From contig PDIP01000039.1 of the NCBI GenBank assembly GCA_002811645.1, forward strand, positions 47,061-111,060: a stretch of 64,000 nucleotides of DNA, given 5' to 3'. The DNA is from Corallochytrium limacisporum Hawaii. Its lineage: Eukaryota; Protista; Pluriformea. The position numbers and the translations under genes are program-made. The notes under the pieces are model-generated. The model was not told the origin of the DNA and did not search any database. It saw only the letters and a program-made list of their open reading frames with translations. Shown one piece after another: positions 5,536-45,850 of the stretch; positions within the stretch are counted from its first letter, which is position 1; each line of letters opens with the position of its first letter.

Positions 5536-6171
5536 ATGGAGAACATTTCAGCCTTTAATCAACAACAGCGGAACCAAGAGACCTCGCAGAGTAGCAGCTG
5601 GATTAGTATGGACTTCTTGGAACGTGGACAGTCAAGTTCGGGAACTACTGGAGACGTCACTCAAGATGACAGCTGGTGGGGCAAACTTGCAGGAACTGCG
5701 CCGCCCCCACAGGAGCAGAGCTTTCTGGATCGCCAATGTCTTTCGCTCTCACGATTCCAGCGCTTAGTTGCCTGTGTGGCCTTCCTTATCTTTAGTGCAA
5801 CGAGTTTTGGTGCTGCATTAGTAATGCTGCCTACAATGGTGTTGGCACCGCGCAAGTTTGTTCTGCTCTTCACGTTCGGTAGCTTGTTCGCAATGTGCTC
5901 CTTTGCTTTCTTGTACGGACCAACAGCATATATTAAGCATCTGATGGAAAAAGACAAACTTCCTTTTACGATCGCCTTCATTGTATCTTTAGTGGCAACC
6001 TTGTACTTTGCAATGGGCATGCAGAGCACTATCCTGACGCTCATATCCTCCGTTGTCGAGATCGGATCACTGACATTTTTTGTCATGAGCTATCTCCCTG
6101 GTGGCACAGCAGGTGCAAGGGCAATGTTCGGAACCGTTTTAGGCGCTCTCAAGCGCATGATGTTTGGCTGA
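5536..6171 (+). CDS. SFT2: Vesicle transport protein SFT2 (Got1/Sft2 family)
   Basis: LSRFQRL, four hydrophobic helices, PRKFVLLFTFGS, SYLPGG near the C-terminus. Confidence 0.9.
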   Translation: MENISAFNQQQRNQETSQSSSWISMDFLERGQSSSGTTGDVTQDDSWWGKLAGTAPPPQEQSFLDRQCLSLSRFQRLVACVAFLIFSATSFGAALVMLPTMVLAPRKFVLLFTFGSLFAMCSFAFLYGPTAYIKHLMEKDKLPFTIAFIVSLVATLYFAMGMQSTILTLISSVVEIGSLTFFVMSYLPGGTAGARAMFGTVLGALKRMMFG

Positions 6172-6289
6172 AGAGGAGAAATAGATTCATTGGCATTAAA
6201 GAAACTACACACTTTATGATGTAAACATATACAGATCTCGCTATGGCTATGGGAGACCATTGAAATGATTAATTTCCACGACTAACCCT

Positions 6290-6751
6290 CTACTGCGCAG
6301 GTTGTTGCTGCTGTTGTTGTTGCATTGCCGCTGCTTTTTCCTGCAAGACCTGGTTAACAACAGTGATCTGCTCACCCTTTTGGTTGATAGTCTTTGCGAT
6401 CATTTCAATTTGCTGCTTTAGGTAGTCTAAACGACGGGTGTAGAATTCTGTGGCGTCTGACAAAGACTTTTCAAGGTAATAGCCAGTTCCCAGTTCGACC
6501 GTGACCTTGCTTGTATCCTTTATCTTGCCATTGATGTAGATCGAGCTTGTGAGGGGTATTAAGCTCTCCGAACCATTTGGTTTGTCCTTGATAAAATTGA
6601 TACTTTGCTTCGCGTGCTGCAGCCGAGCAGCAATGGATTGAAGCTGGCCCTCCGACTGCTGCAGATACTGCAGTTCTTGATCAAACTGCTGGCGCAGCTG
6701 CTGTAGCTGCGGAATCGCAAGCTGCATAAGATCTACTCCCTTGCCAGCCAT
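6290..6751 (-). CDS. PFDN5: Prefoldin subunit 5 (alpha-type)
   Basis: LIPLTSSIYINGKI...VTVELGTGYYLEK hairpin between coiled coils; 153 aa. Confidence 0.93.
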   Translation of the reverse strand: MAGKGVDLMQLAIPQLQQLRQQFDQELQYLQQSEGQLQSIAARLQHAKQSINFIKDKPNGSESLIPLTSSIYINGKIKDTSKVTVELGTGYYLEKSLSDATEFYTRRLDYLKQQIEMIAKTINQKGEQITVVNQVLQEKAAAMQQQQQQQPAQ

Positions 6752-7998
6752 ACTGAATGTGCCGTGTGTTCAGTGTGTTCGGACTAAATCACTATCCTTT
6801 TCTGACGGTTCTGAACGCTCTGCATGACACAACTTCAAGTAGGTTTCCGTATCATCGTTTGCCTCTAGTCGTCCCGTTGTCACAATCTCAGTCCGGTGAA
6901 ACAGAGCAGAAAGTGTGGAACTGCACCGTAATGGCAGCGGATAGCTAATGGCGACCATGGTTCCGCGTCGCCAGTCCATGATTGCCCTCTTCTCCTGGCC
7001 TACCGTTGTGCAGGAATACAATTGGGTGGCCGCGCGCCACTCTGACCAGACAACACGCTGCGCTTCCTCAACCTAGTGCGGAAGGAGGGGAACCGTTTGG
7101 CTGGCTTTTTTGGTTTTCTCGGCCTCGAAGAGAAAACGACTGGAACGCTATACCAGCCTGAATAACACTGATGCCCCTATTTAAGTTAATTCAAAATAAT
7201 GATAATCCTTTATTTTTCCCCTTTTTCTTTGTGCTTCCCCTTTTGTTCCTGGTCGAGCCTCTGAGGAGTTTGCTGCGATGGCGAATTGCTTTTCCCTGGA
7301 CGCCCGCCTTGGCGGGAAATGGGTGTGAGGCCGCGGTTTGGCAAGGGAACGGGTGCGGGTGCGATCCCCAATTTGGACCCCTTTTCTACTTTTTTTTTTC
7401 CCCTTCTTTACCTGTTCTTTTTCTGGGTGATAGTTGTTGGGTGCAATTTTTGGCTTTGTGCTCTGTCTTGAGAATCTGTTGTGCTGCCAAGAGGCGTGCT
7501 GTTGTTCAGCCTGCCAGCCCGCCAGCCTGTGTGTGCTCCCAGCCACGGCCCGCTCTCTAGGCAGCCAAATCGAAATGAGGAACCACCGCCGGGGGGGGGG
7601 GAATTTGTGAAAGAAGGCGGGGAGCAAATCCATAGGAAACGAAAGGGGCTTCTTCCGGCTTGGCTCTTGCGTTTGCGGTGTGTGCGTGACGAAAGACAAG
7701 CGGGCACGGACCGCATCGATTCCTAGTCATCCGTTTCACACACACACACCATCTAACCGCGTAGGGAGGACCGGTTGGCACAGAGATCTAAGAGCAGGAG
7801 ACAGACACCAGAAGCACCCCTTGGCACTAGCACGCAGCCCTGTGCTGCTGCTGCGGCTAACGGCTGCACAGCTTCAACATGATTTGATTTAGAGAACAAT
7901 GAGCGTAAGCTACTTGAGGAAAGCTGCTGCTGTGATTCACAATCTTTGGTGTGTACACTTAGTACGAGAACCTAAAGAACGAACGATTAAATACAAAG

Positions 7999-8373
7999 AT
8001 GGTTGACAGGAAAGACAATGGTCCCAAAGATGTGGACGTCAAGAAGATGCTCGGCCCCCTTGCTGGCCAGCTCACCCTGGGTGTCGTTGCAGGATACTGC
8101 TCTGGCTACGCTCTGAAGACAATTGGAAAGGGTCTTGCCCTGATCTTTGGCATTTCCTTTATCAGTCTGCAACTTGCCCAGTATAAGGGGTACATCAAGG
8201 TCGAATGGAGCAAGATTAACGACAAGCTCAATCGCGAGCTGGACCGCACTGGTGATGGTCGCTTTGATCAGGATGACCTCAAGTACTACATCAAGCGTGG
8301 TCTGGAGATCCTTCAGTACAACTTGCCTGGCGGCAGCGGATTCGTTGCTGGTCTCATGTATGGAATGAGCTAG
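7999..8373 (+). CDS. FUN14-domain mitochondrial outer membrane protein (FUNDC-like)
   Basis: QLTLGVVAGYCSGYALK, LQLAQYKGYIKVEW, GFVAGLMYG motifs of the FUN14 family. Confidence 0.88.
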   Translation: MVDRKDNGPKDVDVKKMLGPLAGQLTLGVVAGYCSGYALKTIGKGLALIFGISFISLQLAQYKGYIKVEWSKINDKLNRELDRTGDGRFDQDDLKYYIKRGLEILQYNLPGGSGFVAGLMYGMS

Positions 8374-8585
8374 ACGGAACGACCGCATAGTGAATCGCAG
8401 GTAGCTTAAGGATGACCGAGGTCAGAATAAAGTTGTATCCAACAAAGCATCCATATCCAAATACATGCTTATCTCAAGCAATGAGTCATTCAAATATCAA
8501 CGGAATAAACTCGGTTCTACTGGTTGATTATATTCAATGCATATCGCGTACATGTGTGGGATTGTAAATACATCTAAGCAGCCTG

Positions 8586-10451
8586 TCACACGTTGTCATC
8601 GTTGGCGTTTAGGGTCCTATTGGATCCAAACTGCACATGGACACCGCTGAGCCTGGCGTTCAAATTCGTCCGGAATGTCTTCACCTTCCTCTCAATGTCA
8701 TCCATATCAAGAACGCCATCCCCTGTCTCATCGAGCTGTCTGAACTGATTTCGGATCAGCCAGAGATCGTTCTCGCTGCAGCGACCAAGTTTCAGAAGTA
8801 GTCGAATTGTAAACTCGTATTCTGTGATGTGGCCATCACCATCAACATCGAGACTCTTAATGTACTCCGGGCTGAGCTCGGCAAAGAGGACTTGCTTCTC
8901 GAGCTTGGCCTGCTTGTATCCCAGCCAGGCGTCAGCGATGCTACCTAAGGCATTAGCAGTAATAACAACACCGAAAATGATGAAGAAGACGGTGTAGAGC
9001 TTGGATCCATCTGTTGTTGGGGAGAAGTCACCATAGCCAACTGTCGTGCAAGTCACTACGCCAAAGTAGATGGCGTCCAAGTAGTCCCAGTCCTCCCAGA
9101 TGAGGAGGAATGTACTGAATATAAGAATATAAATGATAAAGATCACGATAGCCTTAAGTGCTTGCCACACGTAGGAACTGATGCGCGGCATGTTCTCCGC
9201 GATCCGCGCCTGCATCATTTCTGCATTTTGAGTACTGTTCGCCGTCACACGGAGCCGGTCTCCAAGGCCCTCTTCCCCCTCGTCCTGATCAGTCCGCTCA
9301 TGGCCGACTGCTGATTCGGCCTTGTGAATGGCCTTCTTGAACGCTTCTGCCTGCTTGTTCAACAGGAACTCGGACAGCTCACCAAGACACAAACCAGCAA
9401 GACCGATGCCGCAGAAAATGTAAATCATGGTGATAATACGAGTACTGGGTGTGTCCGGACTGATATCACCGTATCCAACAGTGGTAATTGTGACAATGCT
9501 GAAGTAAATGGAATCAATAACGGTGAGATCCTGGATAACGCCGTACAGAATTGCGCTCAATATGATAAATACTAAGAAGATGCCCAGCGCAATGATAAGG
9601 AATCGCAAGTCCCTGACGTTGACCTCCAGAGGAGTCTCGTCCCGCTCGACGTCCTGCATATCAATGCCCTCGAGGATAGTGAAGGTGATTGTGTGGCTGG
9701 CGACGCTGGAACTTGATTCATTTCTTGTTACCTCCACTGTTCCATACACGTACCCGGCATAGTCACCTTTCTTGTTCTTGAGCTCGAACTTCTTCGGCGT
9801 AATTCCTTGCCCGGCCAATTCAAGAACTTCCTGTACATGAAGATGAGATTTTCCCACAAGATCATCTGTGCTAAAGGCATCCTGGTCATATACAGCAATC
9901 ATGAACCTGTCAGTTGCCGCGTTTCCCTTTTGCGGGTCCTTTGGTGGGTATACAAAGGTCAACACGTTGTGGTCCGCCCGAGTGAAGATCACGTTCGACC
10001 CGCCATTGCTAATGTGTTTTGTGCGATGAGAAACCCCGTACGGTTTCAACTTGATATAAACGTAAGGGTCCATGTAGTTGTACAGTAGACTCTTAGCGTG
10101 GTGGTCATCCATCTTGACCCCGGCCTGCTCAGCTGTGGCCTCCTCTGCCAGTTCAGGATGGCTACCGTACCATTCTTCTGTGGACTTTTTAGTTGCGGTC
10201 ATATCAGTCCATGCCTTGGGATTGAACCACTTTAGATCGCTTGTGGCGTCACCGACACCTAAAGAAACAGTGGAGGCCCTTTTCTGCTTTTCCTTCGACT
10301 CCATGTCCGGGAGGCTGTCACTGACCAGCGTAGTACGATTTCCATTGCCGGTGGCGGTAGTACTTGTGCGAGCAGACGACGACTCGACCGTCGGGCTGGT
10401 GGCCGCCGGCGAAATGGTGACCGGCAATTTGTCCTTGCTTGCGTCCGACAT
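8586..10451 (-). CDS. Two-pore-domain (4TM/2P) potassium channel, TPK-like, with N-terminal C2 domain and C-terminal EF-hands
   Basis: Two TTVGYGD selectivity filters each flanked by TM helices; C2 motifs DPYVYIKL and VYDQDAFSTDDLVG; EF loops DVDGDGHITEYE and DETGDGVLDMDD. Confidence 0.9.
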   Translation of the reverse strand: MSDASKDKLPVTISPAATSPTVESSSARTSTTATGNGNRTTLVSDSLPDMESKEKQKRASTVSLGVGDATSDLKWFNPKAWTDMTATKKSTEEWYGSHPELAEEATAEQAGVKMDDHHAKSLLYNYMDPYVYIKLKPYGVSHRTKHISNGGSNVIFTRADHNVLTFVYPPKDPQKGNAATDRFMIAVYDQDAFSTDDLVGKSHLHVQEVLELAGQGITPKKFELKNKKGDYAGYVYGTVEVTRNESSSSVASHTITFTILEGIDMQDVERDETPLEVNVRDLRFLIIALGIFLVFIILSAILYGVIQDLTVIDSIYFSIVTITTVGYGDISPDTPSTRIITMIYIFCGIGLAGLCLGELSEFLLNKQAEAFKKAIHKAESAVGHERTDQDEGEEGLGDRLRVTANSTQNAEMMQARIAENMPRISSYVWQALKAIVIFIIYILIFSTFLLIWEDWDYLDAIYFGVVTCTTVGYGDFSPTTDGSKLYTVFFIIFGVVITANALGSIADAWLGYKQAKLEKQVLFAELSPEYIKSLDVDGDGHITEYEFTIRLLLKLGRCSENDLWLIRNQFRQLDETGDGVLDMDDIERKVKTFRTNLNARLSGVHVQFGSNRTLNANDDNV

Positions 10452-13146
10452 GATTGGTTTTGTTCTCGTGTTCCCAGAAACCTTATGTCAACATCCGCAG
10501 TCAGAGCCATACCCGTCGCCATAGGCCCTTGAATTGGTCGATTTCTTTCTTACCTTCACCAGACCACTTCATTTCGTCTAGGGCATTCGACATGTCATGC
10601 GGAGTTTCGTCGATACTCTGCGTAGTTCGCCATCGGACAGGAGGCAGGGAAGCAAGACAATCGGCTACCAGAATGGAGAGACCGAAGAGGAAGGAATGTA
10701 ATGTTGGCAGCAGCCGGTGCCTAAGATTGTGGAAAGGCAGACATCTATCTAGCGGAGCGCGCAGAGATTCCAGCAACGGCGAGGCCATCCGTTTTCCTCC
10801 ACTCGCACCACACTTCCAGTTGGTCCATACAATATGTATAGAGTTTGAGCAAAATCTACCCGAAATCAACCCCTCGCGAAATTCTTTTCACAGGCACAGC
10901 GGACTGGGAACAGATAAGAACCGCAGAAACGGACACACGGTGGCACGGTGACGCTCTTTGAGACATATCTACCCACACGAAATCCCCCCCCCCGTCTTAT
11001 AGAAAATAACTGACAATGTTTTCAACATCCGAGGGAATTGGCATGAAAAGCCGAATTTCTACGCTCTCTCTTGGGGCTCGCGTCGCGTTTAAAGTGGGGC
11101 AGAACGAAGGGGCCAAAGGGGGGAGAAGGGGGAGGGGGGAAAGACAGCAGCCACTCCTCCACTTCCAAAGATGGCCTCTCCTCCTTCTTCGGGCACTGTG
11201 CAGAAAACGCCGTCGGTGATTGGTAGAGAAAGTATGAGGCACCGTCGCGAGAAAGTGAAATCCTTCAGACTCTCGCTCTCGCTGTTCACTGACTGCCACC
11301 CGACCAATGGCGGTCCAGGAGCTCATCGCTTTTTTTTTTCCCCTTTGTGAGGACCCACACTTCCGCGGACGGAGTGGCTCCCAAGGTTGGAGATGAAGGG
11401 ATGAGTCCGTCCGCTCCGCTGCGCTATTGGACCTTTAAGTCCAAAGGCAGTCTGACGTCTTTTTCAATCAAAACTCGAACTTTCCCTCTCTCTCTCTCTC
11501 TCTCTCTCTCCCCCTTCTCCCCTTTTCTAGGAATCATTCTACGTTGACTGCCACTTTGGCGTCTGACAGGTCCTGGGTTTCTGGTTCCTTTTTGTGGGCA
11601 ACCCACCGTTCTCCCTGGTCTTTGGTGGGGGAGCGCGCATGGTGGGAAACGACACCCCCTCTTTTGTCCTTTTCTTTTTTTTGGTTGTGTTGCTTAAGCT
11701 TTCCTCGCACAATTTTGCCCGCGGGTGGAGGACATCGGACATGGCGAGACGTGTGCAAGCTTAGGAGGAAAACGATATCACCCTGGCCTCCCCCCCTCTT
11801 TTTTTACACACACACACACTCACACACACACACACGGACGGCGCGCGCAACAGCCGTTGTCTGTGATTCATCTGTAGCCAGTTTTAGACACAGGAAGACG
11901 AAAGAAGAAGAAGAAGAAGGGGGGAAGGGACGGTGCAGCAGCAACTGGGCAGCCGCAATCAGCGACGAGGATTTTTTCGCTGTTGCTTCGTTCTGCTTCG
12001 GAATCTCGCCACCACACATCTCCCTTTCCCTTTTCCTTCTTCTGACATTGGAGGAAAGACGGCCCCGAGATCTGGCTTCTAATGGTCCACCCCCACCCCC
12101 TCCTTCCCCCGCCTTGGCTCCTGCTTGCCCGTTTTCCTTTTTTTTCCCTCTCTGCCTGCCTTATTCTGCGCTCCGATGCGCCAGGCGGCTGGCCCTCGTC
12201 TTCCTCTTTTCCACAGTACGGTTTTAATGTGTATGTCGTACGCATCGTCTGTCTTCCTGTTGGTTGGCAGTGGTGGAGAAATAGGAACGAGAGGAAAAAA
12301 AGGTCACGTATCGAAGATACGGAGACCCTCGACACCACAGCAGACGTTTGTGCGAACAGATGGATGGTGGCCTCAGTACGCAACCGGGTAACGGAAAATG
12401 TGTAGGCCCTAACCTTTTTTTTTTTCTGTTTGGTTTGCGCCCACAATAGACCTTACCTCTACAACCGACCAGTCCAGTCCCCTCTTCCCATTCCATCTCC
12501 TGCCCTGATGTGGGCGGAAGCTTGATCCTACGCTGTGTCGAAGGAAGACTGTGCCCTGGTAGGCCAGCCATTGGTGGTGGTGGTGCGTCGTATTACTTTC
12601 GGGACAATTTGGGTCCGCAAACATGAAAAGGTGGTCAAGCTCCTAACCAGCGGTGTCCCCATATTGTTCTGTTATGGGCATGACCTCCCTTAACAATGGA
12701 CGTGTACCCCAATACAAACCGAGGTCAGTTCAAAAGCAGTCACATCTGTCAACAGGAATGAAATGAGAAAGGTAGGGGCCTCACTTTTGTACATCTGGGG
12801 CCAGAAAATCAGGCCATTTAGTATATAAACAGAAAGCCCTGACGTCCCCCAGCATAAAGTAGGGTTCGCCGACCAACAATGGATTCCATTATGGCCGTGC
12901 CCTTGTGTTGGGGAGGAAGTTTTTTCCACATTTTCAAGGACTTAATATGACGAGTTTGTGCCTTGCTGATCTTGATAACGCACGCATAATGCGGTAGAAG
13001 CCTTCACTTTCTTTATTCAATCTCTAGTTTCTATTGTTACAAACCAACCTCCCGTGTACGACGAAGGTACGCACGTTGGTGCGCAATACTAATATCTAAG
13101 CCCACCAAGCGAGTGAGCTGAACAGCTCGACATGTGATGATTCTCA

Positions 13147-21267: not shown

Positions 21268-21866
21268 AGTAATGGCTCAGTGTGGCAGAGAAGTACTCTG
21301 TCTTGAAGTACCAATGGAAACATCACGTTGTGTGAATAACCCACCCTTACCCAATACCAAGGCGTATACTACTAGTCGAAATGACATGAGATCTTCTTAA
21401 TCTACTTCATTTCTACGCAGTCGAATTGTCCACCCTCAGCTGATCTGTACCCTTCCGTCTGCCGGTTCGTGTAGCGCCCGTGCACGCTAAAATTAGCAAC
21501 CGGCTACGAGACTGGTAGATTATCTATGAAGCGTGGGGCCCCTCCCTTCACAACCTGCTTTCCTCCGTCACTGCCATCGAGAGCCAATAATTAGGCCCCG
21601 GATTCGGAGCTTGGCGAAGAGCACCACGGGTGGGTCTCCGCGGTGAGGAACCGAGAATTAGAACCCGTGTGCCAGACCAAGACAGAACACCTACTCCAAG
21701 GGACACGCATGTACGAAAGTACTATTTCAGTGGCACATTAAGCAAGGAGAACATGCTCAATACCATAAGCAGAATAGCATACTCACAATGAAATAGACAT
21801 CATACTTTGTACAGCATGCTACTGAAGACGTTTAGGATCCCAGTTCGTTGATCAGACGGGAACACT

Positions 21867-22631
21867 ATGACTGAACTTCAAGCCCAGATGGAAGAATGGG
21901 CTATGGAGCTGGAAATGCTGCAATCTATTTATCCTGACGAAGTAGAGTTGCTGCATGATTGGACAGATACAGATGACAACGGATTTCGCATTCATCTGCA
22001 CCCAAGGACAGGGGATGACGAGGATGCACGACTGCTGCTTATTATCCTGCGCTTCGACATGAAGAGAGCAGATGGAACAGTGAATGTAGACATTGAGAAA
22101 AGCCGTGGATTAGACCCAGACGAATACACAAAACTCTTGGTTAAATCGAGGGATGATTTGCTGGAAGGTAAAACCTTATACGAGTGCATTGAAGACGCAC
22201 AAAGTTATTTGACAGATTGTAATGATCGGCCGGGAGGGGTGTGTGCCATTTGTCTGGAACCATCTGATGCGAGACCTGAGATGAAGAAGACTTCATGCTA
22301 CCACCTCATGCACAAGCGCTGTCTCGGTAAATGGTTAAACTACATGACAGAGTACACTGAGAAGGGAGTGCCGTGCCCGGTCTGTGGCCGTCCCATTGAC
22401 GTCAGTGATGTTTCACCTGTACCGCCATTAGAGTCTGCATGGGACGCTAAAACCTCCCGGACAGCAGATATCCCAGACTCGATACGTACTTTGCAGGATG
22501 AGAGGGGGAAACTCTTTCAAATTCAAAGGGCTAAAGGTGGCATCATTGACAAGGATATGAGAGAGAATGTCTTTGTTCTCACATCATCTTCACATGGACA
22601 GCAATCAGAATCGAGTTCCGAGCGAATGTAA
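21867..22631 (+). CDS. RNF25: RWD + RING-H2 E3 ligase RNF25-like
   Basis: ELEMLQSIYPDE RWD start, SRGL, RING CAICL...CYHLMHKRCL...CPVC, C-terminal QRAKGGIID. Confidence 0.82.
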   Translation: MTELQAQMEEWAMELEMLQSIYPDEVELLHDWTDTDDNGFRIHLHPRTGDDEDARLLLIILRFDMKRADGTVNVDIEKSRGLDPDEYTKLLVKSRDDLLEGKTLYECIEDAQSYLTDCNDRPGGVCAICLEPSDARPEMKKTSCYHLMHKRCLGKWLNYMTEYTEKGVPCPVCGRPIDVSDVSPVPPLESAWDAKTSRTADIPDSIRTLQDERGKLFQIQRAKGGIIDKDMRENVFVLTSSSHGQQSESSSERM

Positions 22632-22901
22632 CCGCATTTGTAGTTAAAGAAATCTTTCATATAGTTAGCATCGACATAAACTCATAAAACATCACCATCC
22701 TGTATCCAGTTGCTATTAGAGAATCCAATACTTATGTATTGATGAACAGTTGTGTATGTAACTAAATCGACGTCACTTTCTTACTGTGAACTCGCTGATA
22801 CCTAGACCACTTGCAACAAACTATGGTGTGCCGAGTGTTCCGTCAAGGTCTGGAGACCGGCTGCTGGTTGTGTTTGCTGCCTGTATGGATGCAAATCAGT
22901 C

Positions 22902-24626
22902 TTAGAACTGCTTGACCTTTTCCTGGTATTGCGGATCATCCAGCTGCGGGTGATCATAGAAGGGTACCTTCCACCACAAGAGCCATGCGTTCCAGTAGAT
23001 ACCCCAGACCACCTTTAGAGTCATCAGAGGGTACCGCACCAGGACCCAGAGAAGGTTGGACTGAGTCACAGGCATTTCTTTAAGTGTCATGTATGCATGG
23101 AAGTCCATCTTACTAAGGGACTCTACTTTGGGGGACTCCCCGTCAGCGGTCATCTCTTCCTTCGGAATAGCATGCATTTTCCAGCTCACGTAAGCCTTTT
23201 CCTTAGGCTCAGTGTAGCCGATAGTGTACACATAGTTCATGGACATGAACGGGCTGACATGCATCTTCTTTTTCTGCATGTCGACAAAGGGACCGTCAGG
23301 GGCGTTCTGGGCCACCACAGGATGTACATACCAGCACTTCTCTCCCCACGGTGTGTTGGTGATCTCGCTGACCATAGCGACAAACTTATCTTGCTCATCA
23401 TAGCAATAATAGTAAGATACCGGATTAAAGTGCAACCCGAAATAAGACCAGTGGGTCAGCAGAAACACCCTACCTTGCCCCAGATCAATACCTGTCTCCT
23501 TCAGTACACGTTCCTTGACCTTCGCAGGCTCTAGGTACCAACTCTTCTTGAAATTGGCAACTGCAAACTTACTACCAAAGTTATCGTTTGATGAATAGAG
23601 CCAGTAGTCGTCAAACATGAAGTCAATTTCATCGTTTAGCTCTATGTACATCATGTACATGTCATACTTGAAAGCCCACTTCGTGGGGCTAACACGGTTA
23701 TGGTAGACCTGACCATAGTAGATTTTGTTCTGCGGGTACTTCAGAAGGCGCTTTTCGAGAACCTTCCAGTTTGGCTCCTTCAGGTCCCAGATAATACCGA
23801 AAGCTTCCATTATCTGCAGAGCATTGTACGTCATGTCAATCTCATACCAGCGTAAGCCGGCACGGCTCATGGCGGCATACGCATGGTGATTGTTATGCCA
23901 ACCCTCTCCCAGTGTCACCAACGCCAGCCAGAAGTTGTTGCGCGTGTTATCGTCCGTGCGATAGCGTTTCTCTCCCCAGACATGTGCAAGCGAGTTAATG
24001 GTATACGTAAAGTGCCACAGCAGAATCTGGGCCACAAATACTCCCCAGATGAACACAGAAGGGCCGCCAAAGTAACCCATTGCCGCAGCAAAGAATAGAA
24101 AGGGCACGTAGTGGTATCGCTCGACAAACCAAAGTTCAGGGTACTTTTTTATGTCACGAATGTAGGTCTCTGGGGTGTGAGAGTACTCATCACTGAGCAG
24201 AAACCAACCAAAGTGGCTCCACAAGAGACCATGTCGCACTGGAGAATGGGCATCTTCTTCCTCCTCAGAGTGGCGATGATGGTGACGGTGCCATGCAGCC
24301 CACCAAAGGGGACCCTTCTGCAGGCACATGCACCCGAGTATGCTAAAGACAAACTGTGCTGGCCGGCTGGTACGGAAGCTGCGATGGCTAAAGTACCGAT
24401 GGTACAAGCCAGTAATGAAGAACATGCGTATCTCCACACTCAGCAGGCAGACTACGAGCATCTTCCAGCTGAAAGGGACAAAGAATGGTGTGACAATACC
24501 AAGAAGATGGAGGCCAAAGAAAGTGGCCGTAGCCATATCTAAGCTCACTGTTATCTCTTTCTGCTTGTGGACCACATCCCTGGGGACTCCCATTGTCTTC
24601 TTCGTGACCATGGCTTCAGCAACCAT
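22902..24626 (-). CDS. Fusion: bacterial-type membrane (delta-9-like) fatty-acid desaturase + DUF1365 (UfaO-like) domain
   Basis: His boxes HRYFSH, HRHHH, HNNHH (~23780-24530); DUF1365 motifs YYGQVYHNR, FGLHFNPVSYYYCYD, EITNTPWGE, KMHVSPF, IYWNAWLLWWK..PFYDHP (~22940-23725); single open frame; first ATG at 24626. Confidence 0.9.
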   Translation of the reverse strand: MVAEAMVTKKTMGVPRDVVHKQKEITVSLDMATATFFGLHLLGIVTPFFVPFSWKMLVVCLLSVEIRMFFITGLYHRYFSHRSFRTSRPAQFVFSILGCMCLQKGPLWWAAWHRHHHRHSEEEEDAHSPVRHGLLWSHFGWFLLSDEYSHTPETYIRDIKKYPELWFVERYHYVPFLFFAAAMGYFGGPSVFIWGVFVAQILLWHFTYTINSLAHVWGEKRYRTDDNTRNNFWLALVTLGEGWHNNHHAYAAMSRAGLRWYEIDMTYNALQIMEAFGIIWDLKEPNWKVLEKRLLKYPQNKIYYGQVYHNRVSPTKWAFKYDMYMMYIELNDEIDFMFDDYWLYSSNDNFGSKFAVANFKKSWYLEPAKVKERVLKETGIDLGQGRVFLLTHWSYFGLHFNPVSYYYCYDEQDKFVAMVSEITNTPWGEKCWYVHPVVAQNAPDGPFVDMQKKKMHVSPFMSMNYVYTIGYTEPKEKAYVSWKMHAIPKEEMTADGESPKVESLSKMDFHAYMTLKEMPVTQSNLLWVLVRYPLMTLKVVWGIYWNAWLLWWKVPFYDHPQLDDPQYQEKVKQF

Positions 24627-25606
24627 ACCGACTTCCTGTATCCAGATGTCCCTGTCTGTTTGTATCTCTGAGATAGTTGTATGTCTGTACCGTCCCAACA
24701 GGAACCAGCTGCAGGGATGGCTAGTTCATGGCGCTAATCGAACAAATAAAATTGACTCCATAGAAGTTTTTCGTTTCGGACTCACCCAATGAGAAACACC
24801 GAAGATCGGATGTCATAGAGACCCCTCAGAGGCCCAAATACCCATTGCCGAGATCAGTTCTGACCAGTTCGCTTACATATCACCAGATAACCCAAGACAT
24901 TCCCCTCTGGTGTCATCAGTTGATGAGCAAGACAACTCAAAGCATTCGATGACATGGGCCCAAACTTGTGATCCTTCGGATATCGTATCAAGAGAGATCA
25001 GTGGTGTCTGCAACCAGAGAAACTTCACAACAGCGCTATTAGAGCATCCAGTTTCCGTTTGAATTCGTCAGTGGCGAGAATCGCGGGACGGGGCCAGAAG
25101 GGTGGGGGAAGGACACTTCGATTGCTCACCAAACTTCCTCTCCCCCATCGCCCTTCCGCTCAGGGCGGGTTGGGGGACTTCCTCTCCGGAGGAGACTCTG
25201 AATTTAAACAGTGGAAAAAGTTCCGGTCAATGATCGCGTGTGCCACGCACAGTGGTCGCATCAGGAAGCAACAACGTATTTCTGTTAAAACACCGGGCCA
25301 CAAAATATCACCGTAAGATGAGGAATACTGTTTCCTATTCGGATCGATGAACATCCAGATATGTGTCCAAGCATTGAACAGTGTGGCGGATCGCTTCCTT
25401 GCGCTTCTGTGGGTGTGGATGTCCCCTATTTTGATACCGTTTGAAGTGTATGAGAGGTGTTCCAATAAATGCGTACCATCTACCAATGGCTCCTCCATGT
25501 TTCTTCCTTCCCCCACCCCCCCTCCCTCCCCCCTTGTCTTTTTCATTCAAGCAAGTCCGAGTGAGATAGATACAGTGGGAGACAGAGAGAGAAACGAAGG
25601 TCCTTT

Positions 25607-25843
25607 NNNNNNNNNNNNNNNNNNNNNNNNNNNNNNNNNNNNNNNNNNNNNNNNNNNNNNNNNNNNNNNNNNNNNNNNNNNNNNNNNNNNNNNNNNNNNN
25701 NNNNNNNNNNNNNNNNNNNNNNNNNNNNNNNNNNNNNNNNNNNNNNNNNNNNNNNNNNNNNNNNNNNNNNNNNNNNNNNNNNNNNNNNNNNNNNNNNNNN
25801 NNNNNNNNNNNNNNNNNNNNNNNNNNNNNNNNNNNNNNNNNNN
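25607..25843. other. Assembly gap (N run)
   Basis: Run of n, with a G-tract on its right flank. Confidence 0.99.
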
Positions 25844-27936
25844 GGGGGGAGTTGAGGGGAGGGAGCGCAAGCATGGGTTGGTGGTACTGGGTCATAGCTT
25901 TCGATCTTACAAGGGTTGCGACAGATTTTTGGGGCGGGCACCTCTGGCACACTTTGACGATTGCATAGCCGCCCTGCCTCGTCACGACCTTTGCACGCAC
26001 GCACAGTTTTCGAAATGGGAACTGGAGACCGCAGCAGCAGTTCGCAGTTTGCGTCCCTCCTAGCTCACCACTGAAGTCGTCGTGTCTCCTCTCCGCATTT
26101 CACAAAAGCGTGAACTTCAGTTGGAACTGTTGAACATTCAGTAGAAACCGACCGGTACTTGACCGTCCCTGACAAATCGCGCGGTATGGGCCCACCTGGC
26201 TCCAAACAGCCCCGGGGTTTTGACTTACGAGAAGGGAGGGCGGAGCCAGTCAGCAGCTGTGACTGTTTTGCGAATCGGAGGGCTCGGAGATCCAATGGTA
26301 GGGTACCTGGCCAAGGGAGAAGAGATTGGGCGCGGAAATTTTGAAGGGCGCTCGGTATTGAAAGTTTTCGTAAGTTCGCGTTGGCCTCCTCGCCGCCTCA
26401 AACAGTTCAGCTGCACGGAGGAAAAGGGGCCAAGGGAGCAAAAAACCTTCCTTTCGTGGGCAAAATCACACCAGAGATTTTGTCGGGTTCGTTGTGTTTT
26501 CCTTTTTTTTTTTTTGGTCCTTCCCACTTTCACCTGCCTTTCCGAACTTTTGTGCGCAGAATGCTCTGTGGACCCATGTCAGCGCCTGTCAGTCCTGTCA
26601 TTTTGTTGCATTGACTACAGTTGTATGGCAGTCTGACTGAGCACGATGGCCTGGATATTTCATCGGTGACCGGTCGAGGCGAGAGGCACACAGCGCAAAA
26701 CGGCGGACCTAGAAAGAGGGTCGCGGTGGGCAATTTACCACCGGGTCAGACAGCGATGTGGCTTGTTATTGCAATCAAAAAGTACCGGGACGCAGTGCCG
26801 GGTGAAAGTGTGAAGCAAAGTTGTGTTCTTCAGATCCAAGGGCACGGTTATTTGACACCAATCCTGCTTATTGGTGTTCTTCAGCAGGAAGCATCATGTT
26901 TGAATGAAAGAACATTGTCAACGATATGATGCAAGCACGGGTGTTGATGCGCGGAGGTAGCAAAATATGGTCAGGCTGTACGGGTTAACTATTGAACAAT
27001 GTCCAAAGTCGATGGGCCGTCGGCACTGCGGACAGGTGTTTGACAGCGGAGGTCTGTGTGACACCCACTGTTTCGTCCGGTACATACTCAGTGTCCAGCG
27101 GCTATTTGTCTCCTGCGTACGAAGGTGCCCTCTGTATAGATGCTGGACCCTCCCCCTGCGGCCCCAAAGGTCATCCCACCTTGCCTGTGGCGGCAGGGGA
27201 CGGAATATTCTGCTGCCAGAGGGTGATTGTGAGACGATAGGCCAAGGAAGTAAACACAAGACAAATGGTTCAGAGGATTGCGTATCCACTGCTCGGCATC
27301 TGCCCAGGAACTCGGACATGATGGCCTATCACAACCATAAAACGGAGAATGGCGTTGGACGATGAAGCGCTGACTGCCATTGACCGGATTGCAATTGACC
27401 GATGGTGACAGGTAACCGGTGGGATCGTCAAAATGTGAGGAACTGTTACCACTTTTCTTAGTCCTGAACAGACAGGCAAAGGTGGACAATTCAGTGTATG
27501 ATGTGGCCGCCATCCTTGCCATAGATCTTCACCGAATGAAACATATACATCATCGTTCAACAGTGCCTGGACTAGTCACTAGTGTTCCCTATGAAGTTGA
27601 TGTCCACGTTGAGATTTCGAGGGGTGAGTCAATCACGAAATTTTGATTTTCGTTAATACTCTATTAAGGAGGCGTCGAAAATCAGTTGGTACAATTTGGC
27701 TTTGAAAAGCAGCTATAGTCAAGGTATTGGCATACCTTGATTTCAGTAACTGATCAGAATCAAGAATTCCGAACCCACTTGCACGAGCGCTCGCCGCATC
27801 CACTGATGAGGGTACCCGGGTCTGACCAGCAGAGGTATCTCGGACCCTGAAACCCTGTCACTCCTCACACACCTATTGCCCTTCAAAGACTGAAGTACTA
27901 ATCTTGCAAGCATGTAAGGCACAAAATAGACACAGG

Positions 27937-29052
27937 ATGTTGGCCAAGGTAGCAGGAGTGAGTGTCCTAGTGGCCGCAATGGTGACCATGATCGGCTTGC
28001 GGGCGAGCCTATTGGGTATCGGAGTGGGCTGGATCTTAGTAGCCGCTTTCAACGACGACATTAATCTGTGGCTACTAATGCTAACAGCAAAGGAAAGGAA
28101 TGAAACCGACCGGTGCGTTAAGTCATGGAAGGCTCGAACAATCACGGGATCAAGCGACCTGTATCACCCAGAGTCTAGTGCGAGGGACTTTCTGAACATG
28201 GACAACGGTCGAATCGTGCAGCATCAGTGGATGAATTTTGGTTTATGGGAGAGGAATGTCAGATCAGCAACTTTCTATGGCTCGTCAGAGGCGCTGGCGG
28301 ACAAGCTGATGGATGTGGCAGGGATGGACTCTGCGAGTCTCAGTACGGACATTCGCATCGCAGACGTGGGTTGTGGTGCAGGTGACTTTGTGTTCCATTT
28401 GCGCCGTGCTGGGTATAGAAATATCACAGGCATTGACTTCAGCCAGGCACAAATCAATCTCGCGCGGGATCGATGGCAGGCCAGGATGGGCAGCGAGGAA
28501 GTAAAGTTTCTGAGAGGCGATGCAGCACAGCTCAGCAAAGTTGTTAAGTCAGGTACCACCTTCACGCATATTTTGTGTCTGGACTCAGCGTATCACTTCC
28601 GCACACGGGCGCACTTCTTGAAGGAATCCTATGGCTTACTTGACAAACGCGGTGGCGTGCTCGGTGTTGTAGACTTCGTCATCGATTCAGAAGCTTACAA
28701 TTCATTGACAACTGTCAATCGAATTGTTTTTGGACTCTTCCTACGTTTGCTTTCCACGGTGGGGGTCATTCCGATGGAGAACCAATGCGATTTACATACC
28801 TTGCAGCAACAATGGCGCGATGCTGGTTTCAGGGACCATCTTGAGGTCGTAGACGTCACCGCTGAAGTCTTCCAGGATGGCTTCGGACTGTGGATCTGGA
28901 GCCACGCGTTTAAAGTCCGCAGTGTCGCGTTCTGTCTGTCCCTGCTGCCATATCTAGGTATCTCCTGGCTCTTGCGGACCAACTGGAGAGGTGGTCAACC
29001 TGTCATCCGATGTTATGCAATTACGGGGCGTACGTCAGAGGTGAAGCAATAG
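27937..29052 (+). CDS. Membrane-anchored class I SAM-dependent methyltransferase
   Basis: N-terminal hydrophobic segments, WMNFGLW, motif I IADVGCGAG, ITGID, LCLDSAYHF, GGVLGVVDF; first ATG at 27937. Confidence 0.85.
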   Translation: MLAKVAGVSVLVAAMVTMIGLRASLLGIGVGWILVAAFNDDINLWLLMLTAKERNETDRCVKSWKARTITGSSDLYHPESSARDFLNMDNGRIVQHQWMNFGLWERNVRSATFYGSSEALADKLMDVAGMDSASLSTDIRIADVGCGAGDFVFHLRRAGYRNITGIDFSQAQINLARDRWQARMGSEEVKFLRGDAAQLSKVVKSGTTFTHILCLDSAYHFRTRAHFLKESYGLLDKRGGVLGVVDFVIDSEAYNSLTTVNRIVFGLFLRLLSTVGVIPMENQCDLHTLQQQWRDAGFRDHLEVVDVTAEVFQDGFGLWIWSHAFKVRSVAFCLSLLPYLGISWLLRTNWRGGQPVIRCYAITGRTSEVKQ

Positions 29053-29110: not shown

Positions 29111-32100
29111 TCACTGTTCTGTTGCAGCTTGAGGAGACGAAACCCTAGCGGTAGAGACTTCGCCGTCATGGGGTGACTGGCCATTCTCCTGGGCCATGAC
29201 CACTTGAGGATGTTGCTCGAGGGGAGCAGTCGCTTGCTGCTGTAGCTGCTGAGAATCCTGGGTTCGCGGTCCCGCCGCGTTCATTTGCCTGGCGTTGTCA
29301 TTAATCTGCTGCATGACAGAGGTAAAGGCCGCAAAGTTCCTGCGGCCATCACGATATGATTGTGCGGTGTTCATTTTCAGTCCGAATACACCAAACAGAT
29401 GTTGGGCACTGAGGCGATCGCCATCCTCCTTGTCATCCACCACGCCGTCTGCGGCCTTACGCTTGAGCGCAGCAATTTCTTCAACCCTGGTCTCAACCGA
29501 GTCCTTGGTCACTATCTTGTACACACGCACAGGTTTGGTTTGACCAATTCGATGCACCCGGTTGATGGCTTGGTCCTCCACTGCAGGGTTCCACCACCCA
29601 TCAGTCAGAATGACATGGTTGGCAACCGTGAGATTCAGCCCATATGCAGCGGCCTTGATTTGGCAAAGCACGACTTGTTTCCGATCATTTGTTTTGAACT
29701 CACGGATCACTTCCTGCTTCTTCTGGAAGGTGAGAGTGCCGTCGTAGCGAACCCATCCAATGTCCTTTTCATCCAGCATTTGAGAGAGCAGGGTCAGCAT
29801 CCCAGAGCTGAGGGAAAAAACCAGAACTTTCGGATCGTCCTCATCACCAACCTCAAAAATGCGATGAAGAATACTGGCAACCGTTCTCAGCTTCGCGCTG
29901 TAGAAATTGTGCATCAAAGTCTGCCTGGACTCTTCGGCCATTTGTCTGTGATATTCTGCCTGTTCTGCTGCATGCTCCTTTCCAAGCTCTTCTACGGAAA
30001 CGGAGCTGGGGTCATCCGGACGCTGATGATGGCTCAAAGAACTCCTCACGTCCATCCATCCAGACGTTTCTAGTTTTCTGCTTTCTCCTTCAATCCCTTG
30101 CATGCTCCTCCTGGGGATCCGCCGCGGAGTACGTTGCGGTGTCGAAGAAACGGACAAGTGACTATGGAGAGGCATGAAATCTTCTTCGAGCATAACTTCC
30201 AATAAGCCTGCCGTCTTGGTAATAGAAGAATTACATGAAGGACACCCAGGGTAGCCCCAACTTTGTAAGCATGAGTCATGAAGGAAGTGCCCACACTCGA
30301 GTGCCGTTGCACGGATCAAGTCTGTCATGATTTCCACACAGACAGGGCATTCAGCAGAAATTTGACCTGACCTATTCATTCTTGGTTGAAGCGCAGCATA
30401 TCCTGTGGCTGAGAAGAAAGCTTTTGCTTTCTCACGAACAGAACGTTGTTTTTCTAAAACGGCCATGCTTTCTTCATCTTCATGAACTACATCCAGACTC
30501 GCAGAGGTTACATTGTCCTTCCCCGCTTGGGGATTGCCTTCATCGTCCATGTGAAGCTGCGGTCTCGAACTTCCGTCTCTTTTGAATGACGCCACCTTCT
30601 CCTTCTGTGCGCTTAAACTTGCTCTTTTGCGCTTATAGCGTGCAATAGAATCCTTACGACCCCATTCCTCTAAGGACACCTCATTTTGTCTATAATGGAC
30701 GACCCGTGCGTGGTTCACAGCTGCCCGCAATTGACTGATGCGAACGAAAATCAAATTTCGCGATTCCGTTCCCAACGTTCCATTGTATACATGCTGAGCA
30801 AATTCATATTGAGCACCCAGTTCAAGGTGCTTATAGTAATCTCTTTCCTCAGGGGTCAACTCATTATCGATCCACTCATATTGAGCATCCGTGAACATGA
30901 TGGAAGCATCACAGTTTCCATCCCGAAGAAATTCCTTTGTACGGCGCATCATGATGGCAGCAAGGGCATGCCTGAGCTTCTTCACAGTTTCCCCCTGGAA
31001 CTTCTGATTTTCGATTTTCATTTCCGTCAGCCTGCTGACTGCCATCTGCGGTGTGCACTTCATGTCCATGAATACTCTGCCGAAAACAACAGGGGAATTG
31101 AATGGTCGGTACCGCAGGAATCTGAACAGAGAATACAGATCATGAACCCCATTCTCTACGGGGGTTCCTGTCAGACACCACCTGTGCTTTCCTTGGAGAC
31201 AGTAGACAGCTGTACTACTTTGTCCCAAGGCGTCTTTGATTCTGCTAGCCTCGTCGAGGATAATTCGGTGCCAAAATACTCGAAAGATGTTACCTGCTTT
31301 CTCCACATCAAACTCGTAAAGTTTTCTTTTGTTGGTCTGTGATTCCTTCGTCTCACCTCTGATGGCCGGCATGTTCAGGCGCAGAGTCTCATAGGAAACA
31401 AGAACGAAATCCTGGGATGCCAGAAATTCCGGCGGTGCCATCGTGTGAACTCCTGAACGATATAAATACACCTTGTGAGCACCGCTCAAGCGGCTGTGAA
31501 TCTCTTCCGCCCATTGATCTATGAGGGTAGCTGGCATGACGATTAGGTTTCGGTAAGGCGCTCTAGTCAGCTTCTTTTTCACTGAAAGACTTGGCAGATT
31601 GCTAATGTCTTTGACCGGCGTGGGTGTGTTCGACTCTACACCGGACAGTCTCGTGTGCCTCGGTTGTCTAGCCCTCAAATTGTGCCATCGTTCATCCTGT
31701 CGCGTAAGATCCCGTACAGCTTTTTGTGCCTCAATTCGATTTTTCCCAATCTTGTTCGATGCTTGGTCCCGGAAGGTGGAGATTACTCTCTTGGCGACTC
31801 CGTCCTTCTCTGCACGACTCGGGGGATTGAGCAAACAAAGGGATAGCATTTGAATTGTCTTACCAAGTCCTTGTTCATCTGCTAAGATACCGCCATGTGG
31901 TTCTCTCTCTCTCTTTTCCATACTTAACATCCAGCCAACACCACTCTTTTGATGACTTAAAAGGTCAACCTTTAGCCCCCGAGGTGTCTCAATCGGGATG
32001 ACATCTTCCTTCATCATGACACCCTTAGCCAGTTCTGCTACAACGTCACCATCCACTACCTCTTGATTGCTGTCGTCTACTTGATCGCGAGGTCTTTCCT

Positions 32101-32203
32101 CAGCTTCGGTGGGAAGCCCCAGTTCACAGGAACCACTATCGTGGTGGGCGATCCCACCGGCCACCAAGGCGGGACCACCCATCACAGTCCCCGCGTTGCT
32201 CAT
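29111..32203 (-). CDS. SNF2-family ATPase with inserted RING (Rad5/Rad16/Uls1/HLTF-like)
   Basis: GGILADEQGLGKT, IILDEAS, LTGTPVEN, MMRRTK, RING CPVC...CGHFLHDSC...CPSC, GLNL, WWNPAVEDQAINRVHRIGQ. Confidence 0.9.
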   Translation of the reverse strand: MSNAGTVMGGPALVAGGIAHHDSGSCELGLPTEAEERPRDQVDDSNQEVVDGDVVAELAKGVMMKEDVIPIETPRGLKVDLLSHQKSGVGWMLSMEKREREPHGGILADEQGLGKTIQMLSLCLLNPPSRAEKDGVAKRVISTFRDQASNKIGKNRIEAQKAVRDLTRQDERWHNLRARQPRHTRLSGVESNTPTPVKDISNLPSLSVKKKLTRAPYRNLIVMPATLIDQWAEEIHSRLSGAHKVYLYRSGVHTMAPPEFLASQDFVLVSYETLRLNMPAIRGETKESQTNKRKLYEFDVEKAGNIFRVFWHRIILDEASRIKDALGQSSTAVYCLQGKHRWCLTGTPVENGVHDLYSLFRFLRYRPFNSPVVFGRVFMDMKCTPQMAVSRLTEMKIENQKFQGETVKKLRHALAAIMMRRTKEFLRDGNCDASIMFTDAQYEWIDNELTPEERDYYKHLELGAQYEFAQHVYNGTLGTESRNLIFVRISQLRAAVNHARVVHYRQNEVSLEEWGRKDSIARYKRKRASLSAQKEKVASFKRDGSSRPQLHMDDEGNPQAGKDNVTSASLDVVHEDEESMAVLEKQRSVREKAKAFFSATGYAALQPRMNRSGQISAECPVCVEIMTDLIRATALECGHFLHDSCLQSWGYPGCPSCNSSITKTAGLLEVMLEEDFMPLHSHLSVSSTPQRTPRRIPRRSMQGIEGESRKLETSGWMDVRSSLSHHQRPDDPSSVSVEELGKEHAAEQAEYHRQMAEESRQTLMHNFYSAKLRTVASILHRIFEVGDEDDPKVLVFSLSSGMLTLLSQMLDEKDIGWVRYDGTLTFQKKQEVIREFKTNDRKQVVLCQIKAAAYGLNLTVANHVILTDGWWNPAVEDQAINRVHRIGQTKPVRVYKIVTKDSVETRVEEIAALKRKAADGVVDDKEDGDRLSAQHLFGVFGLKMNTAQSYRDGRRNFAAFTSVMQQINDNARQMNAAGPRTQDSQQLQQQATAPLEQHPQVVMAQENGQSPHDGEVSTARVSSPQAATEQ

Positions 32204-37173: not shown

Positions 37174-37235
37174 NNNNNNNNNNNNNNNNNNNNNNNNNNN
37201 NNNNNNNNNNNNNNNNNNNNNNNNNNNNNNNNNNN
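37174..37235. other. Assembly gap (N run)
   Basis: Run of n flanked on both sides by G-tracts. Confidence 0.99.
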
Positions 37236-45651: not shown

Positions 45652-45850
45652 NNNNNNNNNNNNNNNNNNNNNNNNNNNNNNNNNNNNNNNNNNNNNNNNN
45701 NNNNNNNNNNNNNNNNNNNNNNNNNNNNNNNNNNNNNNNNNNNNNNNNNNNNNNNNNNNNNNNNNNNNNNNNNNNNNNNNNNNNNNNNNNNNNNNNNNNN
45801 NNNNNNNNNNNNNNNNNNNNNNNNNNNNNNNNNNNNNNNNNNNNNNNNNN
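45652..45850. other. Assembly gap (N run)
   Basis: Run of n between two near-identical AACCAAACCCC-poly(C) flanks. Confidence 0.99.

Follow-up and report, generated by a model that had tools for sequence, protein, structure and literature searches.

Furan fatty acids are potent scavengers of radicals and singlet oxygen, and the only enzymes of the furan pathway that, to our knowledge, have been characterised are bacterial UfaM, UfaD and UfaO. The Rhodobacter pathway starts from cis-vaccenate on phospholipids, to which UfaM adds a methyl group; UfaD then makes a conjugated diene, and UfaO, a DUF1365 protein, forms the furan with O2 (PMC7380195), which agrees with what the first-pass annotation of the DNA studied here had said of UfaO in R. 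sphaeroides. Just two DUF1365 proteins have been characterised, RSP1090 and RPA2570, both in O2-dependent furan formation (PMC7380195). Here we describe a gene of the protist Corallochytrium limacisporum, placed in Opisthokonta by NCBI, in which a DUF1365 domain is joined to the C-terminus of a membrane desaturase. It occupies positions 22902–24626, on the minus strand, of a 64,000-nucleotide stretch of contig PDIP01000039.1 (‘the window’, which lies within contig C185 of the 24.1-Mb, 286-contig assembly that we searched).

Among eukaryotes, Arabidopsis has AtUFAO1 (AT1G30130, DUF1365) and AtUFAMD1 (AT3G23510, a UfaD+UfaM-like fusion), both lipid-droplet proteins (PMC10940516), and in Chlamydomonas cyclopropane fatty acid (CFA) and DUF1365 genes are co-induced by singlet oxygen (PMC4067076). 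The UfaM/UfaD/UfaO pathway, eukaryotic DUF1365, the plant UfaD+UfaM fusion and the Chlamydomonas singlet-oxygen response are therefore prior knowledge. Our search of the literature found no description of a desaturase-DUF1365 fusion. What is new relative to the searchable literature is that a desaturase belongs regularly to the operon, that desaturase-DUF1365 fusions form a family, that they pair head-to-head with genes combining an amine oxidase (AO) and a CMAS domain, that their desaturase decays in a series, and that a holozoan has such a protein with an intact desaturase.

Like UfaO of Rhodobacter/Cereibacter sphaeroides (RSP1090) and Rhodopseudomonas palustris (RPA2570), the Corallochytrium protein has a full-length DUF1365 with its invariant residues, and in both cases the genetic partners are a desaturase of the flavin amine-oxidase type and a methylase resembling CFA synthase. 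In contrast to UfaO, a stand-alone protein of ~250 amino acids (aa) from a bacterial operon, the domain here makes up the C-terminal half of a membrane protein of 574 aa and falls in a eukaryotic clade of its own. The plant UfaD+UfaM-like architecture also recurs, in a Corallochytrium AO+CMAS protein that is 40–47% identical to such plant proteins. AtUFAO1 differs, by comparison of descriptions, in that it is described with DUF1365 only and no desaturase is mentioned (PMC10940516); nor was AtUFAO1 among the 150 nearest relatives of the fusion’s DUF1365. The features of the gene are as follows.

22902–24626, minus strand: coding sequence of the desaturase-DUF1365 fusion, single exon (open reading frame list, Pfam, first ATG; stop codon 22902–22904)
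23742–24626, minus strand: whole desaturase module, residues 1–295
23820–24470, minus strand: FA_desaturase domain, residues 53–269 (Pfam PF00487)
24384–24401, minus strand: His box 1, HRYFSH, residues 76–81 (motif table)
24276–24290, minus strand: His box 2, HRHHH, residues 113–117 (motif table)
23982–23996, minus strand: NSLAH, residues 211–215, the Asn and ninth His ligand of SCD-type desaturases (motif table, SCD1 alignment)
23883–23897, minus strand: His box 3, HNNHH, residues 244–248 (motif table)
22944–23723, minus strand: DUF1365 (UfaO-type) domain, residues 302–561 (Pfam PF07103, alignment, model)
22713–24750, minus strand: extent of the transcript-like contigs (X1, 22713–24712; X2, 22752–24750)

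The coding sequence is a single stop-free open reading frame (ORF) of 574 aa from the first ATG at 24626. The frame in the ORF list spans 22902–24698 on the same strand (598 aa, counted from an upstream TTG), and 24626 is also the earliest ATG inside contig X1. Both halves matched their Pfam profiles well above cut-off: FA_desaturase with E = 3.2e-20 (73.4 bits vs. 29.7) and DUF1365 with E = 8.7e-59 (199.4 bits vs. 25), the latter over profile positions 1–234 of 235. A Pfam scan found no Cyt-b5 domain in the fusion. The motifs, the profiles and the ORF list thus agree with the first-pass description of one frame that encodes a three-His-box desaturase lacking cytochrome b5 and then a complete DUF1365. 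An alignment of 70 DUF1365 sequences has 12 invariant columns, and the ten that we checked in the fusion are all occupied by the invariant residue (H309, R311, N424, P426, W427, K453, H456, S458, P459 and Y467).

All nine metal-ligand positions are kept in the desaturase half, in a pattern identical to that of four bacterial desaturases and of the genome’s own Ole1-like gene. Aligned with mouse SCD1 (4YMK; E = 9e-25), the ligand motifs coincide. Hydrophobic hairpins at residues ~27–76 and ~185–204, together with helices 31–49, 54–80 and 173–216 of the predicted model, give the two membrane hairpins (four helices) expected of the family. The proteins most similar to this half are bacterial acyl-CoA desaturases (~50% identity). 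It scored 94.8 bits against the DesA-family equivalog NF049918, far below the cut-off of 400, and is best described as DesA-related but not an equivalog. Judged from its sequence, the N-terminal module is probably an acyl desaturase of bacterial type, SCD/DesA-like, that crosses the membrane with four helices and has an intact, predicted di-iron site. It belongs to one family with DesA/DesC-type desaturases and SCD1, has their three His boxes, N...H motif and hairpin topology, and departs from them in its low equivalog score and in the DUF1365 at its C-terminus. Fungal Ole1 is likewise a eukaryotic membrane delta-9-type desaturase with a fused C-terminal domain; that domain is cytochrome b5 in Ole1 and DUF1365 here, which places the fusion outside the Ole1 class. 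Corallochytrium has an Ole1-type desaturase elsewhere in its genome (contig C239 of assembly G000; L037:1318–2619, plus strand), a 433-aa protein with a C-terminal cytochrome b5 that is 32% identical to the desaturase half of the fusion. There are nine FA_desaturase matches in the genome altogether, and exactly one DUF1365 gene.

The predicted model of the DUF1365 half is a closed β-barrel followed by C-terminal helices (predicted local distance difference test, pLDDT, 93.6), and predicted models of bacterial DUF1365 proteins superpose on it with TM scores of 0.82–0.85. Neither Foldseek (E ≤ 0.001) nor a sequence profile found a match to it in the PDB. The best VIA-align Z scores were 7.4 (a designed barrel), 7.3 (the OlmO spirocyclase) and 6.3 (nitrobindin), and the matches with Z of 6–7.4 were ten-stranded ligand-binding barrels, Rv2717c among them. 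Since these scores lie within the tool’s stated background, they support a closed β-barrel fold and the idea of a barrel for hydrophobic ligands, but no functional assignment. In SCD1, both termini and the di-iron site are cytosolic. By analogy, the C-terminal DUF1365 of the fusion should lie in the cytosol, on the side where the desaturase has its active site.

To look at expression, we compared two public runs from two studies with positions 21500–26000 of the window; their label as RNA is a guess. Each run yielded one 2.0-kb contig that covers the whole ORF plus short flanks and ends at the gene borders, implying a 5' untranslated region of at least 86 nt and a 3' untranslated region of ~150–190 nt. 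The neighbouring gene has its own separate contig of 0.94 kb, at a depth ~15-fold (X1) or 4-fold (X2) lower, and no contig of either RNA-like run falls in 24822–26000. These are transcriptome-type assemblies, we infer, because the contigs stop at gene borders and the depths differ gene by gene. The first-pass annotation had proposed looking for reads across the domain junction; one contig per run does span both halves, with no stop. The case for one unspliced mRNA spanning both domains is strong, though not final. The second run differs from the ORF at five sites (three synonymous, I159M and I334T), a sequence difference of 0.3%. About 100 nt 5' of the start codon, at ~24727–24735 on the minus strand, there is a two-codon upstream ORF (ATG AAC TAG) that lies within X2 and outside X1.

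The Corallochytrium protein is one of a family. A full-length word search returned two further fusions, P0002 and P0003, and a word search with the DUF1365 part returned P0121 plus several proteins of 440–454 aa. An exhaustive comparison of the DUF1365 half with 1.84 billion cluster representatives gave 79 matches at E ≤ 1e-30. The nearest relatives are eukaryotic, including five Amoebozoa (Cavostelium, Soliformovum, Trichosphaerium, Stenamoeba and Pyxidicula); in Cavostelium and Soliformovum the protein consists of DUF1365 on its own, preceded by a single hydrophobic helix. With a profile of the N-terminal halves of the unambiguous fusions, we detected desaturase-like sequence ahead of DUF1365 in nine more proteins (P0265, P0220, P0271, P0300, P0177, P0122, P0123, P0168 and P0311), mostly remnants that Pfam misses, bringing the desaturase(-like)-DUF1365 fusions to 13 with the one in the window. 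Metagenome proteins make up most of these relatives. Every one of the 12 relatives has lost at least three of the nine metal ligands, as in P0002, where the boxes read YRHYH / YSPSP / YNKHH, but all 12 keep every invariant DUF1365 residue. In contrast, none of the nine ligands is lost in the window’s protein, and by sequence the Corallochytrium copy is the only known fusion predicted to have intact desaturase ligands. On the DUF1365 side its closest fusion relative is P0121 (L021–L023; Logan runs SRR10663363/65/68). The P0121 contig is compact, with 31% GC and short intergenic spacers, and the P0121 protein has low-complexity runs; the contig could come from a compact eukaryote rather than a bacterium.

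Trees of both halves were made from quick searches and contain several degenerate members on long branches. In the DUF1365 tree (64 rows, reduced from 187), a 23-row clade with an SH-aLRT support of 99 comprised the 13 fusions, four named Amoebozoa not counted as fusions, and six others. The remaining 41 rows stood apart and were of bacterial type where the source is known. In the desaturase tree (47 rows), the N-halves of seven fusions formed one clade (SH-aLRT 96) inside the bacterial-type acyl-CoA desaturases. The window copy was sister to the other fusions and had the shortest branch, 0.9–1.0 changes per column vs. 2–10 in the degenerate copies. Long-branch artefacts are possible among the degenerate copies, but they leave unexplained why the short-branched window copy joins them. 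Because the two halves are placed concordantly, we favour a single, old fusion after which the desaturase decayed repeatedly; a recent private transfer into this lineage is not supported. The lineage-specific horizontal acquisition suggested by the first-pass annotation consequently found no support, since each half falls among eukaryotic homologues, from Amoebozoa and from eukaryotic metagenome contigs. The fusion is common among these homologues, occurring in 13 of the 23 clade members, which is in part the outcome that the first-pass annotation had named as refuting its view.

UfaD-like and UfaM-like partners were sought in the genome, as had been proposed at the outset, and both domains are present as one fused gene on another contig. 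This AO+CMAS gene (contig C143 of G000; L020:5634–8372, plus strand; EukProt Clim_evm17s134) encodes 913 aa, with Amino_oxidase at residues 44–468 and CMAS at 615–891. It is unlinked to the fusion (C143 vs. C185), and tblastn found no AO+CMAS remnant beside the fusion within the window. In three metagenome contigs (L038, L039 and L001), however, an amine-oxidase-type gene stands head-to-head with a related fusion, 1–2 kb away. L038 has a full AO+CMAS gene (6046–9045, minus strand) opposite the fusion (10001–11896, plus strand), and its product is 40–43% identical to Corallochytrium AO+CMAS over the full length. L039 holds the oxidase part with the beginning of the CMAS part, and in L001 the contig ends within the gene, leaving the oxidase part alone. 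L038 and L039 also carry genes typical of eukaryotes (Ras, BEACH/WD40, ribosomal protein S3Ae and ENTH), and the oxidase gene of L001 and L039 is in exon-like pieces. The other fusion contexts were unpaired or uninformative, with only 73 bp upstream of the fusion in L002 and a short, compact contig in L021. DUF1365 is thus associated with a UfaD-like and a UfaM-like enzyme both in the Corallochytrium genome, unlinked, and beside related fusions. An EMP24/GOLD gene lies tail-to-tail just 3' of the Corallochytrium partner (L020:8675–9346), and EMP24-type ORFs occur in L039 ~3–5 kb past the 3' end of the amine-oxidase gene, a possible trace of synteny.

The same set of domains is found in bacterial operons. 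Both of two blindly picked bacterial DUF1365 loci (L040 and L041) have a desaturase in the same string as amine oxidase, DUF1365 and CMAS, and the L040 desaturase is 46% identical to the desaturase half of the fusion. We then surveyed 80 species-level bacterial loci around DUF1365, searched from 10 bacterial sequences; relatives of a single Burkholderiaceae protein are over-represented in this sample, though it also takes in Acidobacteriota, Planctomycetota, Gemmatimonadota and Nitrospirae. The order desaturase > AO > DUF1365 > CMAS on one strand was present in 41 of the 80 loci, and in 35 of the 54 that are at least 14 kb long. This corroborates the operon linkage, stated in the first-pass annotation, of bacterial DUF1365 with a flavin oxidoreductase, a CFA-like methylase and this desaturase subfamily. 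The closest stand-alone bacterial desaturases, P0011 and P0005, have no adjoining DUF1365 and lie in uninformative gene contexts, and operon-linked ones were found only by starting from DUF1365. Bacteria also have AO-DUF1365 and DUF1365-CMAS fusions, of the Rosetta-stone kind. These resemble the Corallochytrium gene in being fusions within the same four-gene module, and differ from it in their partners and in their place in the bacterial clade of the DUF1365 tree. Adjoining the string in L040 (904–2132) and L041 (646–1948) is a divergent pair of an extracytoplasmic function (ECF) sigma factor and a Cupin_7 (ChrR-like anti-sigma) gene, which recalls the control of furan fatty-acid levels by ChrR in Rhodobacter (PMC7380195). 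The L040 and L041 strings also carry DUF2878, DUF1295, SnoaL and SDR genes.

For the history of these genes, the best explanation, which we hold at about even strength, is that a four-gene operon collapsed into two fusion genes, often kept as a divergent pair. From the domain layout, the conserved residues, the transcript-like contigs, the placement in the family and the gene linkage in operons and beside related fusions, all of which are shown here, our preferred reading, with belief and doubt roughly in balance, is that an ancient four-gene operon gave rise to two eukaryotic fusions, one of which is, in Corallochytrium, a membrane enzyme with two catalytic modules. The source would be a bacterial stress operon in the order desaturase, flavin amine oxidase (UfaD-like), DUF1365 (UfaO-like) and CFA-synthase-like methylase (UfaM-like). 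The chemical steps, their regiochemistry and a furan fatty-acid product are what we infer from these parts. The desaturase module would insert a cis double bond into acyl chains of membrane lipids; the CMAS domain of the partner would methylate the double bond and shift it; the partner’s flavin domain would make the conjugated diene; and the DUF1365 module would close the furan ring using O2, giving methylated furan fatty acids or closely related oxygenated products. We propose the N-terminal module as supplier of the cis-monoene because this desaturase shares operons with DUF1365 in bacteria, is fused to it in eukaryotes and keeps its ligands here. According to the first-pass annotation, the di-iron desaturase might replace or feed the flavin step. 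Replacement is unlikely, since the flavin domain is kept in the genome and co-occurs with the desaturase in bacterial operons; feeding stays plausible.

Several observations weigh against this scheme. Furan fatty acids are made in Rhodobacter without the operon desaturase (PMC7380195), and since Corallochytrium has an Ole1-type delta-9 desaturase, substrate for the pathway may be available without the fused one. Because the ligands have decayed in all 12 relatives, the function of DUF1365 does not depend on activity of the desaturase fused to it, and in Corallochytrium too the module could be no more than an anchor. Cyclopropane acids are the reported products of plant AO+CMAS enzymes (as cited in PMC4067076), and on the strength of that citation the product of the fusion module need not be a furan. 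In a free tree that included the operon desaturases (operon clade SH-aLRT 98), the fusions fell outside the sampled operon-desaturase clade, at an unresolved base. A clade of fusion plus operon desaturases was not rejected by the approximately unbiased (AU) test (p = 0.73), the constrained tree being 9 log-likelihood units higher, and descent of the fusion desaturase from an operon desaturase would be compatible with these sequence comparisons. The RNA status of both runs is only guessed. Finally, the predicted full-length model has a high pLDDT (91.3) but a pTM of 0.77, which leaves the packing of the two domains uncertain.

The alternative that survives best is a monofunctional UfaO-like enzyme whose desaturase module serves as a four-helix anchor or scaffold, its intact His boxes being ancestral and their decay still to come. 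We consider this unlikely, though it deserves serious weight. The loss of three or more ligands in all other fusions, none of which has lost an invariant DUF1365 residue, is what such an anchor would leave behind; the nearest stand-alone relatives, in Cavostelium and Soliformovum, have a single hydrophobic helix in place of the module; and the genome has a separate delta-9 desaturase with its own cytochrome b5. Set against this, the Corallochytrium module retains not only the nine ligand positions but also the rest of the domain, at ~50% identity to active-type bacterial desaturases, and its branch is the shortest in the fusion clade. An unused module decays in every other lineage, so retention here argues for use.

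It is also rather improbable, in our estimate, that the product is something other than a furan (a cyclopropane or cyclopropene, a mid-chain methyl or methylene, or a conjugated or oxygenated non-furan acid) and that DUF1365 plays a different role. Enzymes of the Sterculia type reportedly produce cyclopropane fatty acids (as cited in PMC4067076), the authors of PMC7380195 allow another role for DUF1365 in oxidation reactions, and the fold matched only non-specific barrels. But both characterised DUF1365 proteins, RSP1090 and RPA2570, form furans in an O2-dependent way (PMC7380195), and the three-way linkage of AO, DUF1365 and CMAS equals that of the proven pathway.

The surroundings of the gene bear on its origin. 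On one side is an RWD+RING protein gene (21867–22631) and on the other a 1030-aa ORF (29111–32203); the genes flanking the fusion are eukaryotic, and the GC content of the ORF (49%) is close to that of the window (50%). The locus is best explained as a real, probably transcribed, intron-less nuclear gene of a holozoan protist. It is very improbable that the gene comes from contaminating bacteria, was transferred horizontally in very recent times, or is a product of faulty assembly or gene modelling that merged two neighbours: although the desaturase half is closest to bacterial acyl-CoA desaturases and the gene lacks introns, the contig and neighbours are eukaryotic and the composition host-like, the gene recurs with 0.3% differences in a second run from another study, one contig crosses both halves without a stop, 12 other proteins have the same architecture, and the DUF1365 half groups with Amoebozoa, not bacteria.

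An S-adenosylmethionine methyltransferase gene (27904–29052, plus strand; 382 aa, with a hydrophobic N-terminus), divergent from the fusion, was considered as a part of the lipid module and is not supported as such. It matched only generic class-I profiles (Methyltransf_25/11/31), with CMAS below cut-off (E = 0.003); its best solved relatives are natural-product methyltransferases; and it lies 3.2 kb from the fusion across an assembly gap. This gap, a run of N at 25607–25843, is followed by others at 37174–37235 and 45652–45850.

A broader reading joins these threads: the operon was captured early in eukaryotes and collapsed to two divergent fusions, of which the Corallochytrium copy alone stayed catalytically intact. 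As a whole we regard it as tentative, and doubtful in the sum of its parts. The furan fatty-acid pathway would then begin with delta-9-type desaturation, as an integral step that has gone unrecognised until now, encoded in bacteria by an operon that, to judge from the two loci checked, may sit beside ECF-sigma/ChrR-like regulator genes. The di-iron module may also help to provide the ring-closing barrel, which lacks a cofactor, with O2 or electrons, and would later have decayed to a pseudo-enzyme anchor in most lineages. A desaturase is a conserved fourth component of the module, present in some two thirds of the long loci in our bacterial sample and joined to DUF1365 in eukaryotes, which suggests that the pathway can start from saturated chains.

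A single natural chain that combines an intact desaturase with UfaO is a handy construct for reconstitution and structural work. The graded series within the family, from a putatively active enzyme to a pseudo-enzyme anchor to a single helix, makes a clean case of domain decay after fusion. With Corallochytrium, the module now extends to a close unicellular relative of animals, single-celled and marine.

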